Shown: positions 21,101 to 27,100, counted from the stretch's first letter. The stretch: DNA of 64,000 bases from Bugula neritina (GCA_964035545.1 OZ037767.1:27234628-27298627), one strand, 5' to 3'. Numbers and translations are program-made. The notes: generated by a model not told the origin, from the letters alone.

Positions 21101-24100
21101 ACAGCATAGCTCATGAGGCAGCATATCTACAGAGCAGCTGACTGAGCTCACCTCAATGCCAGGGAACATTTCTACAGTCGGCTCTCTGCCTTCCGGAGGT
21201 CTCACCACTGTAGGCATGATGGTGTCAAACCTGGATGTGTCTTCCCCTGGCTCCTCTAAGGTCTGCGATATATAATATAAAGTATATAATATACAATATG
21301 CAATACACAATATATAATATACAGTATATAATACACAATATATAATACACAATATATAATATACAATATATGTATAATACACAATATATAACAAATATAT
21401 AATATACAACAGAGAGTATTAATGTTGGAAAGAAAGTTCAGTACTTCTAAATACGTGTATTCCGTGTAGTTGCTTAACAAAATATAGGCATAGACAGCTG
21501 CAGCATTGAATAAAAATAATGATTGACTTTATTTAATAAAAATCTAGCAAAAACAAATACTATGTATACAAACTCCCTATCTAATAAACAAATTTGGAAA
21601 AATTGGACAATTAAGGTGTGTCCTACTAGCACCATTACAATATTAACAAATACCCACAACAGCATACTATAGAATTTACAACAGTATACTACAATATTCA
21701 CACACTAACAGCACCCTACCACAGTATTCACACCATTATCTTACAATACTTTTGCATACCCAATGAGTAGCTTCAAACATCTTGAGGTCTAGAGGGTCCC
21801 CATTGAGCTCTCCACCCATGCGTGTCAAAGAATGACACGTGGCCATGGCTGAAATGAAAGGGCCACGAGGTAGCTGACCTGAATCATGGTACACCTGGTG
21901 TAACCTGAAATATCATATTTTTATATTCATAAATCACATCAAATTTTCAACCAGATACTATTAGCTTACTGTATCGGTTTTGTGTCAGTGTCTGGGTGAA
22001 TAATAAACTTTAACTATTAGCCAACTTGGCAACAGGTTTTCAAGTTTATTTACTCTCAAATCGTACCAATATTGATGCATAGATAAACTTCTTAGCCATC
22101 ACAATGCCAAAACCAATGGTCTATTCTCACAAAGAGTGTAAATATTGGAATCTAACTGTGTGCTCCTATAATGTTAAAAATCCTCCTCTTTGGCTGTTTG
22201 ATTATAACACACTGACTTGTGCTGTGTAGTGAATTATAGCACTAGCCCTGCCAGCTAATAATAGCTTTTAGTGAATGTGTTAAAGCCTGAAAGCTTTAAT
22301 GATTGGTGGCATACCAATACACTTACTAACAGCTAGTTGCGATTTTTAAATTAAAATTAAACATATTCTTCGCGCAGGCTAAATTATTTTTTCTGAATAG
22401 TTACAACTTGCCATAATGGCAGATATGAGAGTGAAATATATTACATCTGTATATAGGTGAGTGTTTGGTCACATGATCACATCAAGTACATTCATGAAAC
22501 TTCACTTCAATCAATCAATCAATCATTATCTAATCACAGGTGAGTCGACTGGGTCAAGATTTACAAGAGTTAAATTTGTAAGCAGCTTTGAAAAATGAAC
22601 CATTTGCTGGTAGAGAAACCCTGACTCTTACTAATGGCATTGAAATGTAGCCTGAAAACTTAGATACTTAAGAATTGGTTCAATAGAGAGCAAGTTCGCA
22701 AGCCACAAAGCTAAATAAATAGATGATGTAGAACTTAAACTACACACAATATTTTTCAGTATAACAGAACAGCTGCTCACCCTTCACCTAATGCTGGAAC
22801 CATGCCCCACAGATCTAGCCCATCTTCTGTGAGAGTTCCAGTCTACAGAGGAATAAATGTCAAGGTTATACAACTCCTTCATACTTAACACCTGAGAGGA
22901 GTAATTAAATATAACCAGTAAATTGTCTTCAGAACACAGTATTAATTTCAAATGGCTTCTTCAAACACTCTTGCAAGAAGCTTCTGTTACATAACTTAGT
23001 ACAATAAAGTGCATACCACGCGATCAATAACTATATGTACAGGTTTATTACTTTGTCAAAGCAGAATAGTTTGAGTTTTCCACATAGATTTATTCTTGGC
23101 GGGCTGATACAGAAGATGCCCGCAGTTTTCAGTCTACGTTGGGCGTACACCATGCCGACAGTCATAGCGGCGGGTAGAGCAGGGGGGACAACTATTGTTA
23201 CAATGTCCAGCACTCTCTTGATGACCACCGACATGGGTTGCTACAGAAATAAACACTACTCTGCTAACAGTCAGTAATTTTATAACTTGATGGTTTACAG
23301 GAAGAAAGATTATATGACCCAGACAAACATTACAGCTGCTTTTATATTAAATACACTATATTAAACATTGTACAATAATACAGTGTTATTCTAATTTATA
23401 TCATAATACAACGTTGTTCTATGTTATATTATAATGCAATTATAATGCAATGTTGTTATGTTATATTATAATACAACTATAATACAATGTTATTCTACAT
23501 TATATGACATCATATACTAATACTAGAACTACTAAAATAACTCTTACATGATATTTGGTCATAATATAGATGGTGAATGACATTCCAACCAGAGCAATGG
23601 CGGCCAGCACCAGGATAAACCGGATGGACTCCTGGTAGAACTTGAAGTCCATGGGTTTAGGAAACATAATAGAACGTATGAGCTCCCCTTTAGCAGTCTG
23701 GAAACCTGTAACAGTATATGATGACGTAACACATACAATAACGACTGTAGCACTGCTGAAGTAGCACTAGTATCAGGCCCAAATATTGAACAAGTACGAC
23801 GCAACTAAATATCTTCCACCCTGTCATTCTTTAGTCTGAAAGGTAAGAGAATAAATCTAAGACTAGAATAGATAAATTTATATACCGGTTGGTGTAAATA
23901 AATTATTACACAGTATTTGGACTCTAAGTATTGACATTTGAATATTAATCTTTAGACATTCCTGGCCAACAAGTCATAGTTTTGGCAACAGTCTTCTCTC
24001 TTAACTATAAAGACTAATAACTATTAACTAGCAGCAAGTACTAAGTAACCAGTAATATACAGGCGCACAGAGTCTCTAGTACAGAGAATTATTTAAGAGA

Positions 24101-27100
24101 AACCTGTGCGGATAACAGTGGCTTTCACTGTGGCATTTCCATAGTATCTAGTCTGTAAGACTTGAGTGCCACAGAAGAGAACGTGTCTTTTATACTCATT
24201 AGGACAGAACTTTTCTTCAGCTCTCGTGTGAGGAAGGGGGGTTTTGGTCACTGGCACGCTTTCACCTGATGAATAAAAATAACACAAGCTATTAAATAAT
24301 TATAATGGCAGTTGTTATGGACAATCACAGCTCAATGACAAACCCATGTCCAGAAAAAGCTATATGAAACAAGGTAGTTATACAAATTGAAATAACTACA
24401 ATAATTTAAATAGGCACTGCAACACTGAAATATAATTTTATATTTTTAAAAACAATATTCATAATTTCAAAGCAGATATTTAGTTTTTTTTTTCTAAAAC
24501 AAGGAAATTTGAATTTTGCAAATTCAACTAAATTAATTTGGAGAGACACGGATTAGCACCATCAATGTGAGCTGAATGGGTTAGAAGATCAGTATAAATT
24601 ATGATATAAATTGACCAACAAGAGGAAACAACTCCATTACCTGTGAGCATAGCTTCATTGACTATACAGTTTCCTGACATCAGCACGGCATCACAGAGCA
24701 TCATACAGCCATTGGCTGGAATCTCGATGACATCACCAGGGACTAGCTCATAGTTGGTGATGGTTTTCTTTACTGTGAAATATTATATATATAATCCAAT
24801 GTGTGCCAATAGAGGAAATATTAGGTATCTTATAAGTTTATACCAAAAACAAAGGTTTTAATAAAATAACTAATAGTGAAAATGAACACATTACAACTAG
24901 CCTAAAATAAAAAAGTATAAGTATCCATAGCTGTATTGGTATGCCACCCAAATGTATTGGCAGGCAGCCAATCATTAAAGCTTTCAGGCTTTAAAGCTTT
25001 CACCAAAGCTATTATTAGCTGGCAGGGCTAGTGCTAATTCACTGTACTGCATGAGTCAGTGTGTCATGATCAAACCGCCAGAGAGGAGCATTTTTAGCAT
25101 TATACGCACACACAGTTAGACTCCAATATTTACACTCTTTGTGAAAATAGACTATCGGTTTTGGCATTGTGATGGCAAAGAAGTTTATCTATGCATCAAT
25201 ATTGTAAGTTTTATTAGAATTATAATAGATCATGTCAATTTGTTTGGTTCTGTGATGTTCATAGTGTTTCTCTGACTTTTGATTTATATTGTTACTACTT
25301 ACTTACACAATTTCTATTTTTTCCCATTTTTCTAGGGTACGATTTGAGAGTAAATAAACTTGAAAACCTGTTGCCAAGTTGGCTAGTAGTTAAAGTATAT
25401 CATTCAACCAGACACTAACACAAAACCGATACAATAGCACCTATAACTCACCATTGTCCTTTGAGACAGTGTTGGTTGGTTCAACAGGAGTCTTCACCAT
25501 GTCATGTAAAGTAATAGCTTGCTGAAAGAGAAAATAACTAATAAAATGCTCTGCAGTTCAATATGAAAGGTCAAGTACATTGAAAACAGTGAATAATATA
25601 ATACATTAATGATTAAAGCATTAAAATACTAAAACATAGTATAACATAATACAATACAATGCAACATAGTATAATAAAATAGATCGTAACATTATATAAT
25701 ACAATATAATATTACATAGTCCAGGGAAAGAGAACTCTATTATACTGCTCTCAATGTGAGGTAGAAATTGTTTTTACAATTTTCATTAAAACTGGTTTAT
25801 AATAGAGAACAGCCAAATTCACAAGTATAAAAGTTAACATTAAACATTTAGCCTAACGGAAAAAATTAATATTACTTAAGCCTGATATTTACCAATTAAA
25901 ACACTTCATTGTTTTGTTATAAACAAATTACATGTATTGTTTTGGCCATGTATGATTATAAAGTGACAAATAATCATTAATATATAAAAATAATACTGCT
26001 GCCCACCTTCTTTGTTTCATATAAAGATATAGCAATAGAAATCAGAGATATGAAAGCAATGGTGGCAGCATAATAGTAATAGTTATCTGACATCCATAAA
26101 CCTATGCTGGCAATCTGGAAGATGTAGAATGGATTGAGTACCTACAATAACATAATAAAATAATACAATAATATAATAAAACAATACAATGATATAATAA
26201 AACAATACAATCATATAATATACACAACTTCAGTACTCACTAGTCACCAATACGTGTGAGGAAATATAACACTCAATTATATACTGCAATTATATTGAGA
26301 ATGAAATGATGACTACAGCTTGGCAGAACTAAAGTTTTCACTTTTATAGCAAATAAAATGTTCAATTACAAAAACTTTACATTATAAACAATAAACAATA
26401 AATAAATACATAAAAATTAAGACATAATCACCTCCTCAACAAACAATTTCCCATAAGATTTCACTTCTACATCAATCTCATTCTTTCCATAAACAACTTC
26501 TCTAAAATTAAGTAAACATTGTCGCATGTGATGAATGGTAACTTAAAATGCAGCATTTGGACTGTTACTTGAAAATTGAAATGAAAGAGTAATTTATAAC
26601 CTCTGTCTTTAATTAATTGTTTAAAGATATTATGCCATATAGTACTTTGTGACTGACTAAATTTAAGCAGCTTCGTGTTCTGTACAATACGAAACTAGAT
26701 ACATAGATATATAGGACGATTACCATGTATAAGAAATCATTAGAACACACATACAACACAATGGAACTTATTTCTCTAATCCACAAGTATTTATGCTGGT
26801 AAGCATTAGCTAATCTCAGGGGTTCTGCTGACACAGGAGAATACTAAAAAGGCAGAAGACAAGATATTTCTAGAACTGAGTCTATAAATCTCGCAAGTCA
26901 AACTTACAGAGCAACTCTCTGGCTCTCGTCATTTCCTTCAAACTTCTCATGAAAATCCATACATTTGACTCCAGTATCCAGACCATGAAGTCTTTCATAG
27001 TTTGAAGTTGAGGGTGTCCATATATACCTCACATTATGATGGTCTAGGTATCTAAAGATCTTAGCCTACAAACATTCTCCAACAAATGGAATGGGATGCT

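Follow-up and report, generated by a model that had tools for sequence, protein, structure and literature searches.

A 64,000-nucleotide (nt) stretch of the Bugula neritina genome (C3:27234628-27298627 of an assembly of 216 Mb; hereafter the window) carries two solo long terminal repeats (LTRs) of a single BEL/Pao retrotransposon family, one of which contains a 132-nt segment that looks like an intron and the other of which lacks exactly this segment. Comparison with the other members of the family in the genome makes it very probable that the segment is a genuine U2-type spliceosomal intron on the sense strand of the element, and that it has been spliced from the template RNA and repeatedly lost through reverse transcription. 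In full-length elements the sequence adjoining the 5' LTR is complementary to the junction that removal of the intron creates, which suggests, much more tentatively, that the family may prime its own reverse transcription with a spliced leader.

An earlier note on this DNA had described two solo LTRs of one family, each with TG...CA ends and its own 5-base-pair (bp) target-site duplication (TSD), and direct reading and alignment bear out every detail of that description (Table 1). Outside one segment the two copies are approximately 88-95% identical. The long form, copy 2, has 132 additional nt that begin with GTAAGT and end with a long pyrimidine tract and TAG, while the short form, copy 1, is continuous across CAATATT/GGTAC; in the alignment the segment is missing precisely at 22067/22068, as had been claimed, and the placement of this junction is ambiguous by a single base (G) only. 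The AATAAA and the GT..AG boundaries lie on the same strand, again as claimed. Copies matching the full length of copy 2 at 94-98% identity are present at other genome sites, and the closest relatives of copy 1 are intron-containing copies (92%) rather than other short copies. A scan of the window detected no third LTR copy and no internal element sequence. We also asked whether the two copies could be the terminal inverted repeats of a single DNA transposon (21970-25433); this was ruled out by the separate TSD of each arm, by the host exons between the arms, and by the occurrence of such arms elsewhere in the genome singly and as direct pairs.

Table 1. Features of the two LTR copies, the LTR intron and the host gene, in window coordinates.
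Feature	Position	Strand	Details
Solo LTR copy 2, long (intron-containing) form	24932-25433	+	502 nt, TG...CA; 100% self match
TSD ATAGC of copy 2	24927-24931 and 25434-25438	n/a	Read directly
Solo LTR copy 1, short (intron-less) form	21970-22321	-	352 nt, TG...CA
TSD CTTAC of copy 1	21965-21969 and 22322-22326	n/a	Read directly
Putative LTR intron, 132 nt	25204-25335	+	GTAAGT donor, pyrimidine tract, TAG acceptor; position and signals conserved in 40 long copies; segment missing precisely from 24 short ones
Candidate branch region, CTTAC repeats	~25296-25307	+	Within the intron
TATA-like AATATTTA	25126-25133	+	From the conservation profile; ~28 nt upstream of the putative exon-1 start
Exon-1-like conserved block	25152-25203	+	Ends with CAATATT at the donor; TATCGGTTTTG, the 11 nt at its start, is reverse-complementary to the U5 end
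Exon-2 part of the LTR	25336-25433	+	Begins GGTAC; AATAAA at 25353-25358; ends ...CCGATACA
Spliced-type junction CAATATT/GGTAC	22063-22074	-	12-mer; full-length elements carry its reverse complement at the primer-binding position
Host P-type ATPase exons, between both LTRs	23031-24781 (approximate)	-	3 exons; weak but collinear E1-E2_ATPase matches

Sequences for the comparisons were extracted from loci L001-L100 of the assembly and gave 66 LTR copies, 64 of which are in the tree; the spliced state was studied only through natural short-LTR copies and not by joining exons in silico. A donor-junction pattern matched 97 genomic sites, against 2 for a reversed-pattern control, and the spliced-type junction pattern matched 24 sites, against 0 for its control, so that the shared junctions are far beyond chance. 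Approximately 5 three-mismatch matches to the donor pattern look spurious, which places the number of LTRs carrying the segment at about 92-97. The earlier note had held that deletion endpoints varying among copies would speak against splicing; all 24 of the 24 short copies have the identical junction.

Full-length parents, which the note had proposed to collect, are present for both LTR forms. More than 25 direct LTR pairs lie 4.7-6.8 kb apart, with more than 20 long/long and 5 short/short pairs, and no mixed pair of a long and a short LTR was seen among them. Solo LTRs of both forms, of which there are approximately 17 besides the two in the window, have perfect 5-bp TSDs. The LTRs of the short/short pairs differ by 0, 0, 1.2, 3.0 and 5.9%, and those of long/long pairs by 0.9 and 1.6%; because the divergences of the short pairs span 0-5.9%, some losses of the intron appear to be old and others very recent. 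Judging by its identical LTR pairs and its open frames, the family seems to be young in this genome.

Copy 2 and part of its subfamily begin with a 21-nt duplication (24932-24973), in which TGTATTGG... is present twice. The same sequence is single in copy 1 (22300-22321) and in several other copies, and many matches to copy 2 consequently begin at query position 22.

The insert sits at the identical nucleotide in all long copies of all subfamilies and is between 129 and 137 nt long among main-clade copies and between 106 and 292 nt among those of the divergent clade. The donor is GTAAGT in 35 of 40 copies, the remainder being GTAAAT (three copies), GCAAGT and TTAAGT, and 39 of the 40 acceptors are AG preceded by a conserved pyrimidine tract. 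Identity between the two main subfamilies is 85% for the intron, compared with 84% for the exon-1-like block, 90% for exon 2, 82% for the U5-like part and 61% for the U3-like part. Since the intron is on a level with the flanking R/U5-like parts in this respect, it belongs to the conserved, presumably transcribed portion of the LTR. It would thus lie between a conserved block of about 50 nt, which is probably the transcript start, and a part comprising GGTAC, AATAAA and U5, with the AATAAA unchanged in 12 of 12 leaders. We infer that the intron is placed in R and is removed by the spliceosome. An Rfam search with the intron and leader gave 0 matches, and their folding (z-score -1.1) predicts no unusual structure.

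If the intron copy that templates the new LTRs were spliced before reverse transcription, the daughter element would have two short LTRs, each with an exact exon-exon junction. Such short-LTR elements could then propagate as well, and later recombination between the two LTRs of an element would leave solo LTRs of either form, like those in the window. In a tree of 64 LTRs made without the intron columns there are at least 15 changes of state, at least 10 of them forced by well-supported branches, and a topology with the short copies as one clade is rejected by the approximately unbiased (AU) test (p = 1.4e-39). We repeated this with the U3 and exon-1 columns only, chosen since these are copied along with the intron site, strand transfer being able to combine U5/R and U3 from two different RNAs, and obtained 14 state changes, at least 7 forced, with AU p = 1.1e-43. 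The short form, the distribution of which the earlier note had suggested mapping onto a phylogeny, is therefore strongly polyphyletic. Both deep clades hold long and short forms, each of three different 50-nt haplotypes flanking the junction is present in long and in short copies, and the pol of one short-LTR element is nearest that of long-LTR elements (94%, against 87-92% for other short ones). These comparisons strongly support at least 7-10 independent clean losses of the intron, and the polyphyly is in line with the note's proposal that spliced and unspliced RNAs have both been reverse-transcribed and integrated. Repeated exact removal from GT to AG, irrespective of the length of the intron, points to the spliceosome followed by reverse transcription, and a single deletion, a single insertion and microhomology deletion are each excluded or very unlikely.

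The single insertion would make the short form ancestral and the 132 nt a mobile insertion, introner-like or a miniature inverted-repeat transposable element (MITE), that landed once and resembles an intron by chance. The trees are unrooted, so counts of changes alone cannot separate gain from loss, and short LTRs are present in the most divergent clade, both of which would suit this explanation. The earlier note had likewise named an independent mobile insertion as the result that would speak against splicing. The 132 nt alone, used as a query, gave 93 candidates, and of the 40 scored, 39 coincide with family LTRs while one (C2:30855369) was uncheckable; the segment is thus not an independent mobile element, and we rejected it as a free-standing repeat, there being no copy outside LTRs among the 39 scored matches that could be checked. 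It also ends without a TSD or terminal repeats of its own, homologous introns occupy the identical site in both deep clades, the three flank haplotypes are found in both states, and the at least 7-10 supported changes would amount to repeated re-insertion at the same nucleotide. We regard this explanation as highly improbable and largely refuted.

Recurrent deletion at the DNA level, by replication slippage or microhomology repair and with no RNA step, could draw on the one base (G) of microhomology at the junction. One base is insufficient for at least 7 identical deletions, however, and the endpoints fall exactly on GT...AG also in copies with an intron of 106 or 292 nt; moreover both LTRs of each short element are in the same state, as expected from reverse transcription and not from local deletion. 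Such deletions are barely credible as the source of the short form.

A single precise loss, whether by splicing or by deletion, might instead have been followed by spread of the short junction through template switching between co-packaged RNAs or through gene conversion. Recombination in the family is clear, from identical LTRs on elements whose pol is 91% identical, and strand transfer naturally yields chimeric LTRs. The polyphyly nevertheless remains with the U3 and exon-1 columns alone, which are copied along with the intron site, and the diagnostic differences that distinguish the T, C and deep groups lie 8-12 nt on either side of the junction, so that two crossovers inside approximately 20 nt would be needed for each transfer, and at least 7 such transfers would be required. 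We consider spread from a single loss improbable.

Several points nonetheless weigh against the account by repeated splicing. The two short-LTR elements at C6:1024887-1030783 and C2:24646470-24652390 share identical LTRs in the tree columns while their pol is 91% identical; recombination is thus active, recombination between co-packaged RNAs of different lineages is indicated, and part of the 14-15 changes could be recombinational spread rather than new splicing events. The sample of 64 LTRs is biased, as loci were picked partly by the junction pattern. Transcripts and relatives in other species were sought by a related-locus search and an 18-mer scan of metagenomes, which gave chance matches only.

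The superfamily, which the earlier note had left to be classified, is BEL/Pao, and the coding strand is the intron strand. From its Pfam domains and their order the element is a BEL/Pao (Semotivirus-like) retrotransposon: DUF1759 (E 1.7e-7), Peptidase_A17 (1.8e-5) and DUF5641 (1.9e-19) score above the cut-off, DUF1758 and Integrase_H2C2 score below it, and they follow one another as DUF1759 (gag), Peptidase_A17 (protease), DUF1758, the integrase zinc domain and DUF5641. No reverse transcriptase domain was reported by Pfam at E <= 0.01. Because the tract before the 3' LTR is not purine-rich we considered the opposite coding strand, which would be incompatible with the splicing model, but the open frames of the internal region are on the GT..AG strand. 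A six-frame search turned up over 20 copies in which a frame of 1,440-1,696 codons runs uninterrupted, behind long and short LTRs alike. Other BEL/Pao families of the same genome are 27-31% identical in pol, and a search of 5.8 billion proteins with the gag N-terminus (P0001) returned a single relative within the length window, a JGI sequence with 83% identity.

The tract at the position of a polypurine tract before the 3' LTR (L078:1260-1287 and other 3' LTR flanks) reads ...CAATTCGACCCCACCGA; it is conserved among copies, and priming of the plus strand may likewise be out of the ordinary. Three loci (C5:1940163-1946977, C2:26279496-26285902 and C8:38275-44751) hold a longer variant of the family, with LTR pairs 6.4-6.8 kb apart and open frames of 1,898-2,058 codons. 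In this variant the match to pol falls into two blocks (query 1-187 and 324-634), separated by about 1.5 kb of other coding sequence.

In the full-length elements the end of the 5' LTR (...GATACA) is adjoined without spacing by GTACCAATATTG, with the gag ATG 12 nt further on, and no site of the transfer RNA (tRNA) type (TGG) is present within 24 nt after the 5' LTR. These 12 nt, which adjoin the LTR end in approximately 33 elements, are the exact reverse complement of CAATATT/GGTAC, to which the unspliced RNA offers at most 8 nt. All 12 of the 12 positions match the junction in 9 of 12 leaders, the other three being single decayed copies with private mutations; a match at any place in the LTR has a chance expectation of 3e-5, and a match across the junction one of 1e-6. 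The sole variant in the genome, GTACCAAGATTG (AAGATTG), belongs to one LTR in which the junction reads CAATCTT/GGTAC, a compensating change from A-U to C-G. The palindrome CAATATTG is lost with this change, which shows the relation to be one of complementarity and not of direct repetition. In retroviruses, by an established mechanism, the primer has its 3' end copied into the primer-binding site (PBS) during plus-strand strong-stop synthesis, and the compensated change is what such copying would lead us to expect. Pairing in the junction-PBS helix amounts to 96.5% over the 12 leaders, compared with 19-58% in slid controls, and its covariation score is reached by 5 of 500 shuffles.

We looked genome-wide for a multi-copy host RNA carrying the 12-mer and saw no sign of one and no excess over control: outside the family sites and three small tandem clusters there are 33 matches, against 29 for a reversed control. 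Short tandem arrays with a 132-bp period at C5:16123243-16124046 and C6:994965-995108 carry the 12-mer CAATATTGGTAC. This is probably coincidence, as the flanks match neither the LTR-junction nor the PBS patterns. The period happens to equal the length of the intron.

Natural spliced-type leaders are predicted to contain the junction-PBS helix in their minimum free energy (MFE), centroid and consensus folds, with a second predicted helix stacked on it, in which the exon-1 block pairs through its first ~15 nt with the post-PBS sequence up to the AUG. A natural unspliced leader is predicted to fold without the junction-PBS helix, leaving nearly all of the PBS unpaired, and to pair the beginning of exon 1 with the end of U5. 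In all LTR copies TATCGGTTTTG (25152-25164), with which the exon-1 block begins, is the reverse complement of the U5 end, CAAAACCGATA (25420-25433), and this pairing, which appears in the unspliced and not in the spliced MFE fold, could be an alternative conformation. We examined the second helix, of the exon-1 start with either the U5 end or the post-PBS region, as a candidate in its own right and set it aside as a side note: its complementarity is conserved, with variation that is mostly CpG decay in single copies and with no two-sided covariation.

Taken with the position of the 12-mer, these features suggest Tf1-like self-priming that depends on splicing of the LTR, in which the leader would be the element's own minus-strand primer, a tentative reading to which we give close to an even chance. 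The primer of Tf1 is the first 11 nt of its unspliced transcript. In the Bugula family the intron would split the primer, so that only RNA with a spliced 5' LTR could form the 12-bp duplex, extended by the second helix to the gag AUG; this part of the proposal we put slightly short of even. Transcription would start about 28 nt after the TATA-like box, near 25150, and the 5' copy of the intron would be spliced. The leader would then fold onto the PBS and be cut after GGUAC, as in Tf1, and minus-strand synthesis would copy U5 and a short part of R before transferring to the 3' R and proceeding through the 3' LTR region with or without its intron. The state of the 3' copy would thereby set that of the daughters, long if the intron is retained and short if it is spliced. 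Short elements would carry the primer ready-made and remain mobile, as escapees from a splicing switch. The idea in the earlier note that splicing may regulate LTR activity thus gains a concrete candidate mechanism in the complementarity of the PBS to the spliced junction.

The intron and its loss could be real and the 12-nt complementarity have another role near the gag AUG, in dimerisation, cyclisation, translation or packaging control, with some host RNA as the primer. The 12-mer is composed of two palindromes (CAATATTG and GTAC), and the gag AUG, 12 nt downstream, falls within the predicted extended helix; long-range leader pairings are known from other retroelements, such as Ty1 CYC5/CYC3 and the U5:AUG pairing of HIV-1. 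This explanation has more difficulty with the location of the 12-mer, which is exactly where the 3' end of a primer must anneal, with zero spacing to the LTR end, and with the lack of a TGG-type site in the 24 nt examined. A host RNA as primer is also at odds with the near-equality of 12-mer and control matches outside the family and the tandem clusters, and the variant copy is complementary rather than directly repeated, as copying of primer into PBS predicts. We consider a role other than priming unlikely, if far from negligible.

Counting against self-priming, the z-scores of the overall folds are unremarkable, two-sided covariation is not seen in the 7 natural spliced-type leaders, and the covariation comes from one compensated copy alone. 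Being built from CAATATTG and GTAC, both palindromic, the 12-mer could serve dimerisation or other pairing. In addition, the complementary stretch is probably ~45-50 nt from the 5' end of the RNA, with the start placed from the TATA-like box, unlike the primer of Tf1, which is at the very end.

The general view of LTR retrotransposons is that introns are few in them and that the LTRs act as promoter and terminator modules; the present family indicates that an LTR is able to carry a conserved intron. It appears to combine known kinds of behaviour, namely intron-bearing LTR retrotransposons, natural intron loss by retrotransposition and, possibly, self-priming. Introns are described as generally lacking from LTR retrotransposons, except for internal ones in Ogre and EVADE (PMC12786077). 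These two share with the Bugula family a sense-strand spliceosomal intron, but theirs are internal and make subgenomic mRNAs, whereas the Bugula intron is inside the LTR and intron-less daughters are common. A 2026 maize preprint claims the first evidence of introns within LTRs, from long-read transcripts only (PMC13192763). The claimed location is the same; the maize cases are long multi-intron non-coding transcripts in plants, without intron-less daughters or a link to priming, while the evidence in Bugula is genomic and phylogenetic.

The Ty intron experiment (Boeke 1985; his3AI-type cassettes), as summarised in PMC12786077, is the classic proof of an RNA intermediate, and there too precise loss of an intron from new copies marks passage through spliced RNA. 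The introns of Ty and the reporters are artificial and internal, whereas the Bugula marker is natural, is in the LTR and appears to have been lost repeatedly over evolutionary time. The classic experiment would thus have been repeated in nature, with each short lineage a datable record of reverse transcription of spliced RNA. A defective foamy provirus produced by splicing of the pregenome (Saib 1993, as cited in PMC3814592) likewise misses an intron, by that account, because spliced RNA was reverse-transcribed and integrated. There, going by the same citation, the bel1/tas gene contains the intron, and a virus that has lost it is defective, while the Bugula intron is non-coding and in the LTR, and the intron-less elements keep their frames and multiply.

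Self-priming has been described or predicted for Tf1/sushi, Tcn1 and TAR, predicted from complementarity of this kind (PMC6317226). Like these, the Bugula elements have no tRNA-type site, and the sequence adjoining their 5' LTR is complementary to their own leader RNA. Tf1/sushi, Tcn1 and TAR are Ty3/gypsy or Ty1/copia elements, whereas the Bugula family, with its putative self-priming, is BEL/Pao; and unlike that of Tf1, the Bugula 12-mer arises only after intron removal. The family has the features of canonical, Semotivirus-type BEL/Pao elements, which have metazoan hosts (PMC3601003), in its DUF1759 gag, peptidase A17, integrase with DUF5641 tail, 5-bp TSD, TG..CA LTRs and metazoan host, and differs from them in that the tract before the 3' LTR is not purine-rich. 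In a limited literature search neither an LTR intron nor self-priming turned up for BEL/Pao. The intron interrupts the apparent self-primer. If the proposal is true, it would be the first self-priming in BEL/Pao and the first reverse-transcription primer made by splicing, and the intron would be a built-in switch coupling retrotransposition to nuclear splicing. RNA processing would then be connected with the decision between mRNA and genomic RNA and with transposition control.

Both LTRs are located within introns of a minus-strand P-type ATPase gene. Copy 2 is antisense to this gene and lies approximately 14 nt downstream of a host-exon donor, GTGAGT (minus strand, ~25448-25453; region 25434-25453). 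The intron-less copy 1 is in the sense orientation and carries AATAAA. The introns of the host gene also contain AT-rich, minisatellite-like tandem repeats with periods of 8-37 nt and ATAATACAAT-type units, at 21255-21385, 23372-23505, 25622-25721 and 26143-26220.

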